In this document: in pieces, positions 16,189 through 48,983 of the stretch
How the letters are laid out: each line of letters opens with the position of its first letter
Position numbering within the stretch: the stretch's first letter is position 1
Assembly: GCF_000143415.4 (NCBI RefSeq)
Contig: NW_003314279.1
Span: 1,997,679 to 2,061,678 of the forward strand
Length of the DNA: 64,000 nt
Direction of reading: 5' to 3'
Source of the DNA: Selaginella moellendorffii
Lineage: Eukaryota; Plantae; Lycopodiophyta
The notes under the pieces: model-generated
What the model was told of the DNA's origin: nothing
The model's input: only the letters and a program-made list of their open reading frames with translations
The model's database searches: none
Translations under genes and position numbers: made by a program

Positions 16189-19100
16189 CTACAACATCGG
16201 TGGAGCAGACTCTGAGCTCTCAGGCACGTCGCTCAAGAATGTATCCCTGCTCTTCACTTCTGCTCGCTCCCTGTCCTCGTCGTCACGACCCGATGATCTT
16301 TGCTCTTGCTGCTGCTCTTCTTGGTCCTGCTGTTCTTGCTGCTGCTGCTGCTCTTGCTCGTGATCATCTTTCTTCTGTTCTCCTTGCTCTCCTCCTCCAT
16401 CTCCTGTTGCTGGCGTTGTCGTCGTCGCCTCGCTGCTTGCAAACACCATGCTCCTAAACGTTTCAATCAATCCTCTGGCTCCACCGGAAGAAGATGAAGC
16501 AGCGGCGCCTCTCCCTCCTCCTGGGTCTGTGTAGTCACGACGGCGTGAAACGAGAGTTGGAAGAACTGTTTTTGACGAGGACGAACAATCCAGTTGTTGG
16601 TGGTGGACTCTTTTCGACACCTGGATCACTCTGCTTATACGAGCGAACACCCAAAGAGAGGTTAACAAAGCCATCGTTGCTCTTCGCTCTTTCCGCTCTA
16701 TGCATGGCTTTGCTTTTACGTACCTTGCGACTCGGGGAAAATAAAACCGTGGACTTCCTGCTTCTCCTTCTCAACGATTGTAGAATTGGTTGAATAAGGA
16801 CTCCTACGCATGCCCTGGTCATGGATCCAGTTAGAAAGGCGAGCTTGAGCTTGCAAAGAAAGGCCTTTACCTGTCTAAACTTCCCTCCGTGGATGGCTGG
16901 CGTGAAGGTGCATTCGGCCATCTCTTGCTTTTGCTTCTCTTTTCGCAACGCCTCGACTCTGGCAATCCGTTCTTGTCTATCCAACAAGATCAGTTTGTAC
17001 CATTGACTCCTAGTGCTGCAAACAGGAAGGAATCCGAGAGTCAGGAGCATAAAGAGTTTTAAGAAACCGAGAACCAAAACAGTGCTCGTCACGCACCTAA
17101 ACTTTCTCCTACGAGCAGCAAGCGAGCGAGAGAGGCGGCACATCTTAAACTGGAACGGGAACTTCTCGTCCTTCTTCCGTAGCTTGAAAACGTTATGCAA
17201 GCCACTGGATACAATCTTTTTCTGCAAAGTCGCGTGAAGCAACTCCGAGTGTCAGCTGATCAAACCAAGCGAAAAACGAAACAGTTGAAACCAAGTTCCA
17301 TTACCTGCGCTGTTTGCATGAGTTTTTGGAACGTATCGTATGACAATGAACCTTTGCCATCGTCCATGCCCATGACAATCTTAATCTCGTCCACCACTTC
17401 GTCCGAGAACAAGGCAGTGTCGGCTTTTTCGAGATCAACGTAGCCACTCTGAATTTTTTTCACAAAATAGAGCGCGTTAAAGTTCTTCTGTTAGTTGAAA
17501 CGACACTTCTACAAACCTTATCTTTGTCGAGATGATCAAAGATTTGTTTCAACCTCCTTTCCTTGAGGTGATCCAGCAGCTGCCCGGATTTCGTACCAAC
17601 GTAGTGTGACTTGGCAAGCTCAATCCTGTGTTGGATATCTCTGTCCATGAGAGACTTCTTCTTGTCCTCTATAGCAAATTTCATCTGATATAGAAACTCC
17701 CCGATAGGCAAATTCCTCTGCAAAAAGAACAAGACAATGAAACATCCACAACTCAACAAGCTATGAAACGCAAAGAACGAAAAAACGAGTACAAAATCAT
17801 TCGACAAACCTCGCCAACAGGCTGTCGGCCGATTGTTGGAGTGAAAAACTCCTGACCCGTGGTCGGATCGATCAGCTTCCGACCTCCGGGTTCCAAAAGC
17901 TTTTGCTTCTTCTCGGCGAGCCTTTCAGCGTACTGCAGCAACCGATCAAAGACAGTCGTGTTGCTTTCGTCGACTTGTCCACCGTCTCCAGTTTTGTTGA
18001 TGTGAGGATGAAATGTAACTCTGGACGAAGAACAAGGCGAGGGTGAGAAACACAACCAGAGAGAAGGAAAGTTCTGGTAGAAATAGAAAGAAACAAATAA
18101 TTTACACACCCTTCGGGATACCATTGCATGTATTCCGCTTGACGTCGCCTCCGGTGCTCGGCATCGTAAAACAGTTGCTCGAACCGTGTCGTGGTTTGGA
18201 CGTCACGACGCTCAAACGAATGCAAGTAGTTTATCCTGGGTTTGAAGGTGCACTCCATAAGCTTGGCTTCCCACAACTGAAAGAAACATCAAGCGTTTAC
18301 TACGTTTTCAAGGAATGAAAGAATGCAGAGAACCAGTGTAAGTACCTCATTGCGAAGCTCTTGCAAGTGTTCCTGGTTTTGTTTGTCCTGGACTAGCCTC
18401 TCCCACACAACTTCCGTTCTCTTCAAACGTTTGGCGAGCTTACTTCATGCACGTAACAGGGAAGGGAGGCTGCTGATTAGAAACAAAAGGAACAGCGAAC
18501 AAACTAGCTTTATAACTGTGTGTTTTGTTGCTGGAAAAGAGAAGAAGAGAAGCAAAGTTTACCTGATCTCTGGCTTGGGAGAGATGAGCTTCAACTCGTT
18601 CATCTCGTCCTCCTGCTGCTTCTTCTCGATTTGCCGCCGCCGCTCCTGGTCCTTAGCAACAGCCTCCTGGTACAAGAGCTCGCCATAGTTTTGGAACTGC
18701 TCGGCCTCTCGTTCTCTGTTTCGCATCAATCGCCTACTTCTCTGAGAGGAAACTTTGAGCGCTAGTTAAGACAAAACGCATTCTTCTTGTTGTTTACCAG
18801 TGAAGTAACCGGTCGATCCTTCACCATCTTCTCATGGTATTGTTCCGCGATCAGCCGTGCTTCTTCCTCGACCCGTTGTTTTTGCCTTATATAGTCAGTA
18901 TAAAGTCTCAAGCAGAGAGCTTTCTACACGAAAGGAAAAGGAAAAAAAAAAAAAACTTTGTGAGAATGGATCAAGGTGAAAAAAACGCTCACCATCTTCT
19001 CGGATAGCTCCGCCTTCCTTTTGTGCCTCTTTTCCTTCTTCCCCCTGTCCACGGTCTTGGTAGAAAACGTAAACGTGTGTTGGAGGAGCCTCTCGGAGAA

Positions 19101-19598
19101 CTTAGCTGGTTTGATCCCCCTCCTGGCGGCCTGGTACTTCCGAAACTCCTCCAGCGTTTTGGGCTTCTCCATGTAAGCTCTCCTGGCCTGGCTGATAACA
19201 TCCATGGGGACCTGCTTTTGCTTTTGCTGGCCCTTCCTCCCCCGCTGCTGCCCATGCTCCTCGGCGGCGCCACCACCACCGCCACCCTTCCCCTTTGGAC
19301 TGCCACCATCGCCGCGCTGATGCTCACGGTTGATGCTCCGGAGGTTGTAGGTGATGTGCTCCGTCAATGGCACCACGAACTGGAGCGGCAGATCGTGCTG
19401 CTTGCAAAACGCGGTGGACACCTGCTCCGGGGAGTCGCCCTGCTTCAACTCGATCTGCTCCACGCGCCCGTCCTCGATCTCCACCGTGATGGAGAGAACC
19501 ACGCGCGGGTCATGGTCATCGGCCACGGACTCTTCGATCTCCCCACCGCTGGGGCTCTCGCTTGACATCTGGGCGATGGCGATCGACCCACCTCGCAA
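16189..19598 (-). CDS. Multi-exon coiled-coil protein with repeated ECTFxPxI motifs and an EF-hand-like segment
   Basis: N-terminal VVLSITVEIEDGRVEQIELKQGDSPE; motifs ECTFKPRIN, VTFHPHIN, FFTPTIG, ECTFTPAI; QIFDHLDKDK..GYVD; numerous GT-AG introns. Confidence 0.7.
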
Positions 19599-19975
19599 AA
19601 CTCAGCTTTGGACGCCTCCCGGATCTCTCCTCCTCATCCCCGCGCCAATGCCAATCCTGGATCCTCGCCGCCGCCGCGCCGCGCCGCGATCGAGCTGAGA
19701 ATGCCGCTGGGCGCCCTGTGCTAACGGAAAAGAGTGTGCTTACTGTGCTTCCAGTCGCGAGGGGTCGAGACTCTTCGGCGAGGGGCGTTCTCTTTCGACC
19801 CCCGGGTCGTTCGTTACGAGATTCTCGGTGTGACACGCATGCCCTAAAAGCCCGGCGCGCCCCACCGTGGCGCGCCACGTGGCCGCAACGGCCACGATCC
19901 GCCCAACGAAGAGCGATTTAACGGAATCTTTTTATAACGGTCAACGAACATTCTGTGAGGATGTGAGCTTTATCC

Positions 19976-20090
19976 GGGATCGAACCCGCGACGTGTCTAA
20001 ACCCAGGCGATTGGCTAGGGCTAAGCTTTTGGTGGGCATCGAACACCAGCGCGAGCGAGGGGCCGGTGTGCGGGGGCGGGGGATCGAACC
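19976..20090 (-). promoter_or_regulatory. Isolated Pol III B-box motifs (two perfect GGTTCGATCCC, one near-match)
   Basis: GGGATCGAACC at 19976-19986 and 20080-20090, and GGCATCGAACA at 20035-20045. No tRNA cloverleaf can be formed. Confidence 0.55.
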
Positions 20091-20142
20091 CAGTGCCGGT
20101 GCGTGTTAACACTTTGTCGATTCGATCCGGGGACAGTTGGTC

Positions 20143-23100
20143 ATGGTGGCGGGATCACGCCGTCGCGCTAGTGAACACCTTGGCTCTTCTTCTACTAGTG
20201 GCAAGCGCCCTAGATATGGCGCCTCCTCTTCTTCCTCCACACCCACATTGCTAGGGCGCGGGGGGCGCGCCTCGTCTAGGGCTGCCAATGGCGCGCGGGC
20301 GTCGTCGTCCGTGGTGGCGGACGATCCCGATTTCGAGCCGGGGGATTCCGAGTGCGTGGCGCTGCCCGAGGATTCTTGGTTTGGGGCGGAGGAGGCGGCC
20401 GCGGCGATCGTTCCAGTTGTCGAGGATGCCGATGTCTCTGCTGCTACTGCCGCAGCTTCATCGTCGGCCATGCCGCTGTGCTCCGGCCCTCCAGCACAGG
20501 CTTTCGCGCTCTCCGCCACTCCTCTCTACCCTAATTCCGTCAGGTGGTCTGAGGACAACCTCCTTGCAGTTGCCGCTGGACATATGGTCACTATACTGGT
20601 GAGTTCTTCCCATGCATTGTCTTGTTCTTGCTGAAACTTTTCTTTTTTCGTGAAGAATCCAGCATCGCTGTCGGGTCCCCGGAGCTTTGTGTCCGTCTCC
20701 GTGAAGCCGAGCTTCGATTTTGGCACCGTGAATCGTGATGGTACGTGTTAAGTTCGTTCTTGTGAGTAAGCTTTTGCCTAGAGTTTGCTTTTAGAGTTAA
20801 AGCATCATTTGCTGATGCCGCTTACGCTCTCGAGGGATTCTCGTGCCGTGGTTCGCTCGATCGATTGGTCTCCGCAAGGTGTTGGATCCCATGGAGGGTA
20901 CTTCTTTTTCTTTGTTCTCAAGTCACGGGCCTCTGATGTTTTCGTTTTCTCTCGGGCATTTTTTTCTTATCTTAGATGTCTTCTTGCGGTTGCCACGACA
21001 GATTATCGAGTGAAGCTGCACTCGCCACCCATGTCCGAGTATCGATCTGAGTGGATCGAGGTAAGCCACGCTTCCCTTGTTGTCTCTTGTTAACTATGAA
21101 TTTGTATTGGCAGTTGTTAGACGTTTCAGAGATGATGTTTGAGTATTGTATGAAGTTTGAGTTTTTGGAAACGGAAGCATCGTTTGACATGGTACTCCTT
21201 TCGCTGACAGTTTTCTTTCATGATTGACCAGCATTTTGATAGATGTCAGATGGCATAGCTTTCAACAGAGCTTACAAGAGGCAAGGACAAATGTCCCCAG
21301 CTGAGGATCTGCTTCAGAAAAGGAGGAGAACTAGGTACTTTTACGTTTACGTACGCGGCTTTATTTTTGAAATGTTCTGCTTGTGCAGCACACCGGAGGC
21401 TTCAGTACTTGGAATGGAGGTGAGCTACTTGTTTTGTGCTGATGGTTTTGAGCTGACTCGCATCTACTCGCAGGCTGGAAATTTGCTTAACCGTCCTCCT
21501 GTTCTATGGGATGGGCAAGCATCTCTTGCTTCAGCCCATATGAAACCTCTTGCAAACGACGGCATGGCGGATGATGCCATGAAGGTATAACTTGAATTTA
21601 TCTTCAGATGACGTAACGCCTCAATGCCAGAAACGCGGTAGAAGAGGGACTTACAGTGAACAGCTTTCAGGTGCTTGTGATTTTAAATTGTTTTCTCTAC
21701 GCTTCTAAGCAGGTTATGTTCTCGTAGGCTCTGCTGATGTTGAAGGTTTCGACGACGGAAAACAAACTAAAAAGAGAAAACAGCTGAGAGTCAAAGATGG
21801 ACAGCTCTCGAATCTAACCGTCACCGCGCCCCAATACATGACAAGGAGTTCAATGCTGGCCTCTCTAGCCTTGGCATGGTCCTCGAAGTGCTCTTGCTGT
21901 GATAGCAACTCGCGAGTTTTTAGTGCTGTTTTTCTGTCGGTTGGGACGAAGTCTGGCATGGTTGGCTTCTGGCGGCTATCAACACCTGACGTATACTCGG
22001 TTGAAAAAGTGCTACCGCTACCAGACGTAAGCTTTATCGGCTTCTTAAACGCACACGAGTCCTGGGTGACTGCACTTGATTGGGCGGCTGGAGCTTCAAC
22101 TGATCAAGTTCTTCTGGCAACCGGAAGCTCTGATGGGAGGTACAGTTCTACCTCGTATCAGTCTGTATCTAATGGATCTCACTCATGTTACAGTGTCAAG
22201 TTGTGGCAAGGAGATACAAGAGTATTGATGCAGTGGCAACCGTCGGCGCTTTTCCTCCCCTGGACACTTCTCTTTCAGGTGAGGGAACTATCTTGCATTT
22301 AGTTTAGTAAATGACTAATGAAAACTCAGGTTACTGGTGTCGACAGTGTGCCAGTGACGTCTTTGGCCTTGAAATATTCAATTGAGGCGGATAATATTCT
22401 TATTGTCGTTGGAAAAGGATCCGGTAGCGTTTTAGCTTGTGAATTAACAAGTGCAGGCCAGTGCTCTCGCAGGGCTTGCCTTCCACGGGCTCACGACCAA
22501 GCGGTATGCTTCCAAATATGTGCTTTCATGGTTTGATGTGCTTCGAGTTCCAGGTTATGGGAGTTTGCTGGTCTGCAGACAAAGATCAGATATACTCGTG
22601 TGGCCAGGTATGTTAACATTTGTTAAGCCACTAAGTATAAAGTCGTCTTTGACAGGATAACATGCTTCAACTGTGGGAATTCGCTGATACGCAACTCGTA
22701 GCCGTGGAGACTTCCCTTTTGGCATCTGAGGTCCCGGCAACTGCTCCTGACGTGTGTAAAACATTGCAATTGTACCCACACTAAACTTCTAAACCTTACA
22801 GCTTCCGGCATCGGCGTTGGAATCGTTTTTTGGTGTTGCACTGTCACCTGCAAATCTTTCTCTTGCAATGGTAGGATAGGTACTTAAAATTCTCTCTCTC
22901 ACTTTTCCATGTGCAGGTAAGAGGAATTGCTGCTGAAGCTGTAGATCCGATGTATCAATCCAGGTACCAATGTTGTTTTATTTTTTTGTTGGCTAGAAAT
23001 TTAAGATATTGTTTTTCGAAATCGCAGGTCACAAAAGGGTATTGTACAACTGGTCTGGGTCGGACAAGACGAAAATATCGTAAAAGCTGATTGTTTCGAC

Positions 23101-24158
23101 GATCCGAGTGCTGGTAGATCGGCTTATACTATTGCTGCAAGCTGGGAGACAAAAATCATATCGGCATTCTCTCATCTAGATCGTCGAGCCTCGTTCGTCC
23201 TATGGGATTTGCTGACAGTTCTATCATTTCTCAAGCAACTCTGTGGAGGAGAGATACTGGGGTCCGTTTTTCAGAAATGGCTCTCAAATTGGAGTTTCGT
23301 AAACACGGGTACTATCGAGGCTTGCTGCTGGTCAACAGAAGCTCTCAAGACGTGCTTACCAAGCTTGAGTTGTCGATGCCTACAGACAATGATCGTGATC
23401 TTTCGAAGGATAATCCTACAGGACTTGAAACTTGGACTACTTACAGAAGGGTTGGAAGCCATGCACAATTCTGGATCACGTACCCAGTTAACTTCAGAGC
23501 AGCAAACGTGGCTGGAAATCCTTTGGTGCATGGAGCACGAGCTAAGAGAGAGGCTGATGTTCCTGGCTTTGCTCACGGCTTTGTGGTGCAAGTCCCCTCA
23601 AGCAGAGAATGCCCAAGCTAGTGTCAAGATGGAAGCCAGGCTACCAACAGCATTTTTGATGTCCGACTGGATCCTCTTGAACTCGTCAAAGGTTTCTCCT
23701 CAACTGCTGCAGCTCGCCACTGAAGTGCATAAAGTTTATAACAGGTAGCTTCTTTTTTGTGATTGCTGTCAAGATGTTAATGCGTTTTCGGTTGTGGCAG
23801 ATCTGGATCAAGTTCACAAGAGCGCTGCAGCTACTGCGAGCAAACGGTTCCCTTGGAGTACCTTGAAGTTGGCTATTGCCGCGCAGAGGGAATCAACACG
23901 AGAATAAACCATCGGTTGCAGCGGTGCTCGGCTTCCTTGCAGATCTCCCTCCCTGGTCCGTCGTGGTATTGTACGTGCTGCGGTCGAAACGCCTTCCAAC
24001 AGGTTCCAGAGTTTTTTTTCTCCTTGACGTCGAGGGTCCAGATTGAGAGGCTGCCTTCGATTGTGGTGCTGGAGCCCGTTGTGTCGCGGTGTCCCTTTTG
24101 CGGAATCCTGATGCAGAGGATCTTACCGGAGTTTTTCCTCACACCGTCTCTGGTGTAA
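20143..24158 (+). CDS. TFIIIC subunit delta/GTF3C4-like WD40 protein with C-terminal zinc finger, multi-exon
   Basis: YPNSVRWSEDNLLAVAAGHMVTIL, VRSIDWSPQG..CLLAV, AHESWVTALDW..LLATGSSDG..VKLW, and C-terminal RCSASLQ..WYCTCCGR...CPFCGILMQR. Confidence 0.8.
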
Positions 24159-24363: not shown

Positions 24364-26829
24364 ATGTTTTTCTCTCTAGATCACGAGTTTGTGAGCTGTT
24401 ACTGCAAGGACAAGACCGAGTTTGCTACTCTTCTCAGGGAATGTGGAAACTCGAGAGCTCTAGCGCGGGGTAAGCGTGTCCATTCTCTTCTTACTTCTGC
24501 CGGATATGGAGACGATGCGATCCTGTGCAACTTGGTCGTGCAGATGTATGGCAAGTGCGGTAACTTGGATGATGCCCGCTCCGTCTTCGATCGTATTCCT
24601 GCCAAGAACATCTACTCGTGGAACATCATGCTGTCAGCTTACCAGCGTGCCGGTTGTGGAGTTTCGGCACTCAAGCTGTTGCGGGAGATGGATTTGGATG
24701 GTGTTCGACCGGACAGTGTAACTTACGTAAGTTATGTCACCGCTTGTTCATCGGCTGGTGCAGTCGAGCAGGGAAAGTTTGCTCATTCCAGGATCGCTGC
24801 TACTGGGCACTTCGCAGCGGACGTTTCCGTGGGGAATTCGCTGGTGAACATGTATGGAAAGTTCGGACTCGTGGAGGAAGCCAGGACGGTCTTTGAGAGC
24901 ATGGTCGCAAGGAATACAGTGACTTGGAACACGCTTATCGGAGCTTATACCCAGAACGGGCATAGCAGGGAGGCGGTTGTGCTATACAAGCTGGCGAAAG
25001 AGAGCGGTGTGAAGATGAGCTATGTGACTTACGTGGTGGCTCTTGGAGCCTGTTCCACTCTCGGGCAAGGCAGGGAAGTTCACTCGGACATCGTCGCTGC
25101 GACGTGCGAGCTCAACGCTACGGTGGAAAACGCTTTGATCGGATGCTACTCCAGGTGCCAGAGTTTGGAAGATGCCCGGCTCGTTTTCAACTCCATGCAG
25201 TGCCGGAAGAACGCCGTCTCTTGGAACTCTATGATCTCGGCCTGTGTCGCGAACGGGCGTCCTGACGAAGCTCTTGAGATTTACAGGAGGATGGACTCGA
25301 GGCCTGACAGGGTGACTTTCATGGGTGTCCTCGGTGCCTGCTCTAGTCTTCCAGAGGGAAGAGAGATCCAGCAGCGTATCAAGGCAGAAGGCTTGGAGAC
25401 TAATGCCTGTGTGGCCAACGCGCTGATAACCATGTACGGGAGGTGTGGAAGCTTGGTGGACGCGAGAGAAGTCTTTGACGCGATGCCGGGGCGAGATATC
25501 ATCTCCTGGAACGCTCTGATCAACGCTCATGCTCAAAACGGCGATGGAAGAGGTGCTCTCGGGCTTTACCACGAGCTTCAAGCGGACGACATGCTAGAGC
25601 CGGATGGTGTGACTTTCGTGGCAGTTCTCGGTGCCTGCGTAGCCTGCAAAGACTTCAAACAAGGTGACGAGGTCTCCAAGCGGATCATTCGTAGCGGGAT
25701 CTACAAGGACGACGTTGTTCTGGCCACAGCCCTCGTGAGCATGCTTGGAAAGTTTGGCGAGATGGAACAGGCGAGGACAGTGTTTAGCGGCATGGCTAAA
25801 AGGACAGCCATCTCCTGGAACGCCATGCTTGCGGCATACTGTGACAACGGGCACGCTCGCAAAGCTCTGGAGCTCTACCACGCAATGGACGTGGATCCGG
25901 ACGAGGTGACTTACATGACTGTCGCGGAGGCGTGCTCGAGCTCGCGAGATCTTCAAGAGGCTGGAGCTCTACACGAGCGTGCTGCTGCGTCCGGCATGCT
26001 GGCTCATGTCCCCCTGGCCAACGCTCTGGTCGCGATGTATGGCAAGTGCCAGCGCCTGGACGAAGCAACGCGAGTTTTCGAAGGGATTCCTCGCCGGAGC
26101 CTCGTCTCGTGGAACTCCATGATCGCGGCCTGTGTGGACAACGGGGAGAACGCCCGAGCTGTGGAGCTGTTCAAAGAAATGGAGCCGCCACCCGACGACG
26201 TAACTTTCGTGAGCGTCTTCGCGGCGTGCTCCAACCTTGGCGACTTGGCTATGGCGAGGGAAGCTCACGGAGCATTTGGATCCAGGGAGCTGCTCGATGA
26301 CACCGTGGGAACTTCGCTCGTGAGCATGTATGGGAGGTGTGGGAGCCTCGCCGACGCTCGAGCGGTGTTTAAGAGGATGCCGAGGAGGGACGCGACGAGC
26401 TGGACGAGCATGATCGTGGCGTGTGCTCGCGGCGGCGATGGCGTTGCCGGGGTGGCGGCGTTCTACGCGATGGGACTGGAGGGAGTGGCTCCCGACGAGA
26501 TCAGCTTCCTGGCGGTGCTCTTCTGCTGCAGCCACACGGGGCTGGGGCGCCAAGGCCGGGAGTTCTTCGTGCTCATGCTTGAGGAGCTGGGAGCTCGGGC
26601 CGAGCACTACGTGTGCATGGTCGACCTGGTTGGTCGGCTTGGATGGGTGGAGGAGGCACAGAGGCTCTTGGAAGCCATGCCTTTCCAGGCCGGTTCCATC
26701 GCGTGGCTGGCGCTGCTGGGGTCTTGCAACGTCCAGAGGAGCTCCCGGCGTGGAGCGCTGGCGGCCGAGCGCGTGATCGAGCTGGAGCTGGAGGAAGCGA
26801 GGCGTGGCAGCGATTTGCAAGGTTTGTGA
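24364..26829 (+). CDS. PLS-class PPR protein with truncated E region, no DYW
   Basis: Intronless 821 aa with repeated MYGKCG.L.DAR.VFD....N..SWN motifs. It ends after HYVCMVDLVGRLG..MPF..W.ALLGSC. Confidence 0.9.
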   Translation: MFFSLDHEFVSCYCKDKTEFATLLRECGNSRALARGKRVHSLLTSAGYGDDAILCNLVVQMYGKCGNLDDARSVFDRIPAKNIYSWNIMLSAYQRAGCGVSALKLLREMDLDGVRPDSVTYVSYVTACSSAGAVEQGKFAHSRIAATGHFAADVSVGNSLVNMYGKFGLVEEARTVFESMVARNTVTWNTLIGAYTQNGHSREAVVLYKLAKESGVKMSYVTYVVALGACSTLGQGREVHSDIVAATCELNATVENALIGCYSRCQSLEDARLVFNSMQCRKNAVSWNSMISACVANGRPDEALEIYRRMDSRPDRVTFMGVLGACSSLPEGREIQQRIKAEGLETNACVANALITMYGRCGSLVDAREVFDAMPGRDIISWNALINAHAQNGDGRGALGLYHELQADDMLEPDGVTFVAVLGACVACKDFKQGDEVSKRIIRSGIYKDDVVLATALVSMLGKFGEMEQARTVFSGMAKRTAISWNAMLAAYCDNGHARKALELYHAMDVDPDEVTYMTVAEACSSSRDLQEAGALHERAAASGMLAHVPLANALVAMYGKCQRLDEATRVFEGIPRRSLVSWNSMIAACVDNGENARAVELFKEMEPPPDDVTFVSVFAACSNLGDLAMAREAHGAFGSRELLDDTVGTSLVSMYGRCGSLADARAVFKRMPRRDATSWTSMIVACARGGDGVAGVAAFYAMGLEGVAPDEISFLAVLFCCSHTGLGRQGREFFVLMLEELGARAEHYVCMVDLVGRLGWVEEAQRLLEAMPFQAGSIAWLALLGSCNVQRSSRRGALAAERVIELELEEARRGSDLQGL

Positions 26830-42327: not shown

Positions 42328-43309
42328 AGCCGGGTTTCTTTCTTCCTTTTGGCTCTCGCAACACCAGGTAATACGCTCTCATCTCACATGAAAAGCTTTA
42401 CAGCAAAAGCTCTGCAGATTTGTCGTGCGTGCCGTGCTGAATAGAAAAGCATCAAGTGGAGAAGGCTCACGTTGCAAAAGTTGGAAAGGCTGCTGGATGC
42501 GATAGTACGTCTTTTTTTCTCCTCCTGCATTCTTTTTGTTCCAAGTTTTTGTCGGAGTGAGGAGCTTCCCTTTGTTCTTTCTATGAGAGAGAAATTGTGC
42601 AAGCAAAGAAATCCAAGAGAATGATCAAAAGTTAGCATTAAAAGCAATGGAATCCAGAATGGCATTGGCAAGCTGGCCTGGGCATCTTCTTAATTGTTCG
42701 TCACCCTGTAGGGAATCGAACCTGGGTGGAGGCATTTAAAAGCCCCCATGGGTAGGGCAAAGAAATTTTAATACGGGGCAATTTTTTTTGTTACTGGCAG
42801 AGAGGGGAGGGGACGATAGCTGCGCTCGCGCTGCGAATGGAGGCGCTGGCTCTCGCATCATCCACATCGCCGCTGTGGATCTTCTCCATTTCCTCCTCGT
42901 CCTCGCCGCTGGCTATGCCGTTGTGGAGGAGCGCGCCGCCGATGTTGCTGCTGCCGTTGCTGGACGGGTTCTTTGGCGCCAGGAGCGCGGCGATTAGGTC
43001 AAGCGGGCGTGCGTGAGGGAGGATTCGCGCAATGCACAAGAGGTACACACAGATGGGCCGGGAGCAAATGCTGCTGCCCAATTTATTATAGTTACCACAG
43101 GGGGAAAGAGAGGAAGAGATTGTAGTTTATCATAGGCTATAGTTCCTTGATTTTTTCTTCATTCTGGTAGAGGATTCTGGTAGAGGCAGCGGCGGGGTTA
43201 ATCCGGGCTATAGTTTCTAATGGGTTAGGCCTGGGAAGAAAGAAAAAAAAACAAAGAGACAAGGGGAGATAGCGAGAAAAACTGGGTGTTAGATGATGGA
43301 GATAGGAGC

Positions 43310-48870: not shown

Positions 48871-48906
48871 CGCCAAAAGCACCGCACACAAACCTTGCGT
48901 CTTCGA

Positions 48907-48983
48907 TTCGCGCCACGTGGCCTCTTAACCGTTAGATTGTGTCGCTTATGCGAATATGCCCTAAATTTCGCGCCACGTGGCCT
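48907..48983. promoter_or_regulatory. Duplicated G-box module in a 163-bp divergent promoter
   Basis: TTCGCGCCACGTGGCCT at 48907-48923 and 48967-48983, exactly 60 bp apart. Confidence 0.65.

Follow-up and report, generated by a model that had tools for sequence, protein, structure and literature searches.

The promoter region and 5' UTR of the TFIIIC90/GTF3C4-like gene of Selaginella moellendorffii (LOC9655725) carry a cluster of B-boxes antisense to the gene, which we propose to be B-box-only (ETC-type) candidate sites for tauB, acting in negative feedback on the TFIIIC90 gene. We estimate the probability of this reading at about 0.55. In the mechanism that we propose, abundant assembled TFIIIC would occupy the B-boxes, both the one at the transcription start and those within the 5' UTR, and the occupied sites would hinder initiation or early elongation by Pol II on the TFIIIC90 gene; a shortage of TFIIIC would leave the sites empty and the TFIIIC90 gene more active. 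Because the sites are located at the transcription start or beyond it, repression via such a block to Pol II is the favoured effect. Autoregulation by TFIIIC had been put forward in an earlier, sequence-only reading of this DNA, and the support that it receives here is comparative in nature; we infer that TFIIIC, and not another protein, would be the binder and that the effect on expression would be repression and not activation.

The TFIIIC90 gene and its transcripts

The DNA analysed, referred to here as the window, is a stretch of 64,000 nucleotides of the S. moellendorffii genome. The gene of interest had been taken to encode a TFIIIC subunit, and this assignment held: it is the S. moellendorffii orthologue of TFIIIC90/GTF3C4, of the AT3G49400 family (Table 1). 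A search of protein representatives with the last exon returned P0001, which is 99% identical over that exon and corresponds to LOC9655725, and this database entry was the full-length protein analysed. P0001 (1030 aa) scored 72.6 bits against the Pfam family TFIIIC_delta (cut-off 27) and the last exon scored 26.2 bits against zf-TFIIIC (cut-off 23); Pfam searches with single exons were otherwise sub-threshold, significance being reached with the last exon and with P0001. Relatives of the protein carry the source names 'Transcription factor IIIC 90kDa subunit N-terminal domain-containing' and 'like AT3G49400'. As predicted from its sequence, the protein thus combines TFIIIC_delta with zf-TFIIIC, a pair that is the mark of TFIIIC90/GTF3C4 and not of the tau91 family.

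Transcript contigs assembled from four public runs showed GT..AG joints throughout the TFIIIC90 gene, so the RNA behind them was spliced. At their 5' ends these contigs begin at 20015, 20035, 20049 and 20079, and contigs of the divergent upstream gene extend to 19773-19820. The only bin with zero transcript-contig depth, 19822-20008, holds the G-box discussed below. No TFIIIC90 contig extends beyond 20015 in the 5' direction, and B-box copy 1 is upstream of that point; copy 2 is covered by the X1 contig and is where the X9 contig begins, and copy 3 is covered by spliced contigs from all four runs. These data place copies 2 and 3 (20035 and 20080) within the 5' UTR and copy 1 (19976) at or just before the transcription start, a start which contigs cannot fix exactly.

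Three B-boxes upstream of the ATG

Two exact B-boxes on the minus strand had been described at 19976-19986 and 20080-20090, and both are present. Each consists of the exact 11-mer GGTTCGATCCC extended to a 12-mer. The two near-matches described with them fared differently: the one at 20035-20045, with a single mismatch, stood and is referred to here as copy 2, while the one placed at about 20119-20129, with two mismatches on either strand, is at chance level. The three sites are at -167, -108 and -63 relative to the ATG, so that two exact 12-mers and one single-mismatch copy are found inside 115 bp, with spacings of 45 and 59 bp between copies. In the human complex, the positions of the 11-mer at which TFIIIC220 contacts bases are 2, 4, 5, 6, 10 and 11 (PMC11811891); copy 2 keeps all six of these base-specific contacts. 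The two exact sites and copy 2 therefore conform, at the base-contacted positions included, to the B-box consensus GGTTCGANNCC expected of an ETC site.

Across the window, exact GGTTCGANNCC was observed three times (0.51 expected), and B-box matches with at most one mismatch were observed 13 times (14.0 expected), which is chance level; since even this one-mismatch class is at chance window-wide, the fourth site carries no weight. The probability of at least two exact 11-mers in the 574-bp intergenic region, calculated analytically, was 9e-6 under a first-order model trained on the window and 9e-5 when the model was trained on the region itself, the latter figure being biased upwards. A third exact B-box (GGTTCGATTCC) stands by itself at 42712-42722 on the minus strand, and ARAGORN calls no tRNA there. 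The flanks of the Selaginella copies showed no mutual similarity, and simple tandem duplication of a unit was rejected on the grounds that these flanks are unrelated.

A second Selaginella copy of the locus (L001; GCA_000143415.2, GL377599.1) has a promoter 97% identical to that of the window and is probably the other haplotype. It contains about 12 extra bases (window 19998-19999 versus L001:2845-2857) that create an additional exact GGGATCGAACCC, giving B-box cores at -178, -149, -107 and -62 and no others in its 10 kb. With one exact B-box gained or lost through this indel of about 12 bp, copy number is polymorphic (three or four). The upstream neighbour in L001 encodes 799 aa, and a faint EF-hand match was the only hit to it. 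On the other side, an intronless gene for an 821-aa PPR protein (24364-26829, plus strand; PPR, 291 bits) begins about 200 bp past the TFIIIC90 stop, and the same neighbour is found in L001.

Two further elements were read directly in the intergenic region. The G-box that had been noted there is present as the palindrome GCCACGTGGC. Elsewhere in the window, TTCGCGCCACGTGGCCT occurs twice, 60 bp apart, at 48906-48922 and 48966-48982, and its central 14 bases are those of the G-box and its surroundings at 19874-19883; this pair may be a G-box-type promoter element of another gene, shared with the one described here. A role for the TATA-like TTTTTATAAC is suggested by its position.

Table 1 Features of the S. 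moellendorffii TFIIIC90 locus (positions in the window) and B-box cores in orthologous loci (positions relative to the ATG)
Feature or locus	Position	Strand	Description
TFIIIC90/GTF3C4-like gene, LOC9655725	20143-24158	+	many short exons; from translation, spliced contigs and Pfam
TFIIIC90 exon 1	20143-20598	+	ATG at 20143
TFIIIC90 last exon	23802-24155	+	stop directly after
Divergent upstream gene, first coding exon	18924-19568	-	ATG near 19568; from the list of open reading frames and contigs
Palindromic G-box	19874-19883		GCCACGTGGC; in the untranscribed gap between the divergent genes; identical in L001
TATA-like element	19929-19938	+	TTTTTATAAC; about 38 bp upstream of B-box copy 1; conserved in L001
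B-box copy 1	19976-19987 (11-mer 19976-19986)	-	exact GGGTTCGATCCC; at about the expected transcription start
B-box remnant	19999-20004	-	AAACCC; from alignment of the window with L001
B-box copy 2	about 20035-20046	-	TGTTCGATGCC; one mismatch, at position 1; in the 5' UTR
B-box copy 3	20080-20091 (11-mer 20080-20090)	-	exact GGGTTCGATCCC; in the 5' UTR
Fourth near-match	20120-20130		two mismatches, on either strand; not distinguishable from chance
Amborella (L007)	-320	-	GGTTCGAATCC; sole core (GTTCGANNC) in 31 kb
Thlaspi (L008)	-197	-	AGTTCGAATCG; sole core in 11 kb
Second Brassicaceae contig (JGI metagenome)	-264 and -116	-	two upstream cores
AT-rich eudicot, six contigs (JGI metagenomes)	-117 to -129	-	AGTTCGAATCC; sole core per locus
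One moss group, four contigs (JGI metagenomes)	44-56 nt before ATG	-	GGGTTCGAATCCC; sole core per locus
Sphagnum (L005)			no core within 600 bp at <=1 mismatch to the G-form 11-mer
Marchantia paleacea (L006)			no core within 600 bp at <=1 mismatch to the G-form 11-mer
Liverwort-like species (L002; 43-48% identical to the Marchantia protein)			no core within 600 bp at <=1 mismatch to the G-form 11-mer

Conservation of the antisense B-box in land plants

Alignment of the exon-1 peptide retrieved 33 plant-derived contigs from JGI metagenomes, which were considered together with the loci taken from genome records (Table 1). Wherever an orthologue was positive, the core was antisense, no more than 400 bp before the ATG, and the sole core in its locus (3-31 kb), with the exception of one Brassicaceae contig. 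The expectation that orthologous promoters would carry the motif was thus borne out in Amborella, Brassicaceae, the AT-rich eudicot and one moss group, and failed in Sphagnum, Marchantia, the liverwort-like species, a second moss group and the grasses. Among the metagenome contigs, the core was missing from those of Sphagnum type, from the second group of mosses (at most one mismatch, within 600 bp), from two that were unplaced and from nine grass contigs. Some of these negatives may have their promoter further upstream, because the grasses have a 5' UTR intron. The sampling left out ferns (Adiantum included) and represented monocots by grass metagenome contigs only, and P0006 was excluded as it is covered by transcript contigs only, with 2-43 nt of 5' UTR.

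Two of the negative groups contain related sequences. In two grass contigs (L015:2330-2345 and L017), GGTTCGATCAG is found at -162 on the minus strand, with the two final C's lost and apparently inside the 5' UTR intron; it looks like a decayed B-box in a lineage otherwise devoid of the element. The liverwort-like orthologue contains TGAGGTCGATCCCGA, a B-box minus one T, twice (2222-2237 and 2300-2315, 78 bp apart, at -278 and -200), together with GAGATCGAACA at -79; all three may represent the element in diverged form.

For the statistics, one representative was taken per lineage with a 400-bp window, against a background of 12 cores in 169 kb. Four of the 11 lineages, Selaginella excluded, were positive on the same strand, corresponding to a P of about 1e-5 (strand-specific) to 2e-4, figures to be read with the 9-base core having been defined after the Thlaspi variant was seen and with the eudicot lineages sharing ancestry, so that they are not independent origins. 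With the exact 11-mer stated beforehand in the sequence-only reading, Amborella and one moss group alone were positive, for which we calculate, from the 11-mer rate, a P of roughly 5e-4. Footprints of the element point the same way: in Brassicaceae, the motif falls within a block of about 50 identical bases, the remaining intergenic region being 72% identical, and in the moss group a 13-mer is invariant in three diverged contigs while sequence further upstream is unalignable. As at yeast TFC6/ETC6, a B-box is therefore found in the promoter region of the gene and is conserved in relatives, some lineages being without the motif. Overall, the element is, as judged from these alignments, conserved but not universal across land plants.

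Alternative readings of the conserved element

The reading that survives best beside TFIIIC feedback is one in which a different sequence-specific promoter factor recognises the element, for example one of a translation or Pol III regulon with the telo-box, and the likeness to a B-box is incidental. We consider it rather unlikely, and the sequences around the core bear on it from both sides. In Brassicaceae, a second module, CGTCACT(T)GCG(A/C)TTCGAA, extends past the B-box. In both eudicot groups the B-box core is fused to the telo-box TAGGGTTT in an identical 17-mer, GATTCGAACTAGGGTTT, a composite that could have another reader. Amborella shows a telo-box-like CTAGGGTTT (L007:2746-2760) about 60 bp downstream of its B-box, as opposed to the direct fusion of the eudicots. 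The two TGAGGTCGATCCCGA copies of the liverwort-like orthologue, one T short, might not bind TFIIIC, which would also fit a different factor. On the other hand, the only part common to Selaginella, Amborella, mosses and eudicots is the antisense B-box, their flanks differing completely, and this argues against a different factor; so does the fact that Selaginella, Amborella and the moss match the tRNA T-arm consensus over all of its 11-13 bases. Moreover, the gene encodes a subunit of the very complex that binds the B-box. We know of no plant factor with this site.

It is improbable that the B-boxes nucleate a full Pol III unit antisense to TFIIIC90, with Pol III blocking Pol II as at the Polr3e MIR. 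The orientation, conserved in all positive lineages as in Polr3e, would suit such a unit, and on the B-box strand of Amborella an A-box-like site with two mismatches precedes the B-box by 37 nt and a T4 run follows 50 nt after it. In Selaginella, however, any A-box on the B-box strand has at least three mismatches (the best candidate has three) and no T4 run that could act as terminator occurs within 90 nt, so that the antisense orientation of a Polr3e-MIR-type unit is present while a complete promoter and terminator were not found. ARAGORN detected no tRNA or tmRNA in the window or in 13 related loci, and cmscan gave no match to an Rfam family at E<=10 in 19000-21000; tRNA-like or Rfam folds are thus lacking at the site, as had been claimed for tRNA. 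No separate small transcript was apparent among the transcript contigs, small RNAs being beyond what contigs can show, and the copy spacing of 45-59 bp is too short for separate type-2 genes. These negative results (ARAGORN, Rfam, A-box and terminator) leave B-boxes with no Pol III gene at the site, as expected of an ETC site.

Comparison of 19822-20142 by blastn with the window and all loci returned only itself, the second Selaginella copy and 12-mers. With no cloverleaf, no A-box and B-box at tRNA spacing and no dispersed copies in the window or the loci, a tRNA gene, a pseudogene or a tRNA-derived SINE was rejected. ARAGORN, Rfam and blastn in this way bear on the proviso that the motifs might belong to a repeat: within the sequences searched, the motifs belong to no tRNA, SINE or repeat.

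Bound TFIIIC might instead act mainly as an insulator, or as a nucleosome-free boundary, between close divergent genes, a role compatible with feedback on TFIIIC90 but, as the main function, a long shot. The transcript sets of the two Selaginella genes end only about 200 bp apart (19820 versus 20015), the Brassicaceae gene is head-to-head with another gene, and ETC sites are known barriers in yeast. The sites nevertheless sit not midway but towards TFIIIC90, at the start of that gene or past it; in the moss the upstream sequence is a long AT-rich stretch, unalignable between contigs, in which no gene was seen; and a boundary leaves unexplained why the site follows this gene across plants. In two Brassicaceae (L008:2032-3001 and L013:1680-2501), the partner of the TFIIIC90 orthologue is a TFIIIC subunit 5 gene (Pfam Tau95), and the intergenic region that they share contains two related modules of the above type. 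Upstream of the gene in Selaginella, in Amborella and in the remaining loci, no such head-to-head pairing with Tau95 was seen.

An element acting on the mRNA, in which the complement of the T-arm in the 5' UTR pairs with tRNAs or tRNA fragments and tunes translation or stability, appears very improbable. In its favour, the transcribed 5' UTR includes two of the Selaginella copies, and an RNA role would agree with the constant orientation; yet conservation covers only 9-13 nt with no extension into the complement of the acceptor stem, B-box copy 1 is upstream of all contigs, and the 5' UTR folds no better than its shuffles (z = -0.02). The last value also led to rejection of a structured 5' UTR RNA.

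Lastly, functionless motifs arising as chance matches or as decayed tRNA genes or a tRNA-derived SINE, a possibility for which the isolated exact B-box at 42712-42722 with no tRNA and the frequent occurrence of B-boxes in tRNA-derived repeats could be cited, are strongly disfavoured by the chance P of 9e-6 to 9e-5, by the lack of a tRNA remnant, of an A-box and of another copy of the region among the sequences compared, and by recurrence at orthologous positions across land plants, where neutral decay would not spare the B-box alone.

A possible ancient circuit

The distribution of the element raises the possibility, to which we give somewhat short of even odds, of an ancient circuit in much of the land plants whereby TFIIIC would sense its own abundance via a B-box lying antisense where transcription of the TFIIIC90 gene starts. 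Such a circuit would predate the split of lycophytes, mosses and seed plants; it would have three to four copies of the site in Selaginella, have become fused to a telo-box in eudicots, have been lost in grasses and some bryophytes, and be shared in Brassicaceae with the head-to-head Tau95 gene, co-regulating two subunits. By our estimate, the positive plant lineages split about 450 million years ago.

To our knowledge, little is known of how the level of the Pol III machinery is set in cells. The self-sensing arrangements that we found are those of yeast TFC6/ETC6 and mammalian Polr3e/MIR only, with none in plants. If the proposed circuit is true, feedback via the recognition motif of the complex itself would be a recurrent or an ancient solution, and plants would have ETC-type sites. 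It would also offer a short, defined element of 9-13 bp to mutate, present in Arabidopsis relatives, and the patchy distribution (loss in grasses and some bryophytes) offers natural controls.

Comparison with known systems

In the literature searched, the coverage of which was incomplete, we found no report of a plant ETC site or of an autoregulated plant TFIIIC gene, and no plant TFIIIC binding data; two recent papers on plant tRNA genes treat B-boxes solely as internal tRNA promoters. Isolated B-box-type sites near Pol II genes are known as the ETC and COC sites and the TFIIIC-bound Alu elements of yeasts, worms and mammals. The sites described here resemble them in this respect, the barrier and looping roles being those of the known classes. 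These are classes defined genome-wide by ChIP, whereas the plant element is known from one locus, through its sequence and its conservation.

In mammals, the first intron of Polr3e contains an antisense MIR that is occupied by Pol III and exerts feedback by interference with Pol II (PMC5358760). What the two have in common is an antisense promoter element of Pol III type, located towards the 5' end of a Pol III machinery gene and conserved across a large clade. The MIR, however, is a complete, SINE-derived intronic unit with Pol III on it, whereas Selaginella has B-boxes only, with no A-box or terminator and no repeat origin, located in the 5' UTR and where transcription starts.

The comparison with yeast TFC6/ETC6 concerns the same complex. 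Human TFIIIC90, TFIIIC110 and the N-terminal part of TFIIIC220 form a rigid tauB scaffold, the module that reads the B-box (PMC11811891). In yeast, according to the summary of Kleinschmidt et al. 2011 in PMC3334521, binding at ETC6 in TFC6 lowers TBP occupancy and mutation of the site raises the mRNA about twofold. The two cases share a B-box with no Pol III gene in the Pol II promoter of a gene for a tauB subunit, conservation of the site among related species, and the proposed logic that the complex limits synthesis of its own subunit; the regulated gene encodes a TFIIIC subunit in both. The subunits themselves differ, being tau91/Tfc6/TFIIIC110 in yeast and TFIIIC90 (the tau60/Tfc8 position) here, and so do the kingdom and the number of sites, which is one in yeast and three to four in Selaginella. 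The yeast site is placed at -150 to -90, as compared with the transcription start and 5' UTR in Selaginella; the plant orientation is fixed as antisense, by our estimate over about 450 million years, and the feedback in plants is a predicted one. Overall, the B-boxes of TFIIIC90 would extend the ETC6/TFC6 kind of site to a different subunit and a different kingdom, and in Selaginella to a multi-copy form.
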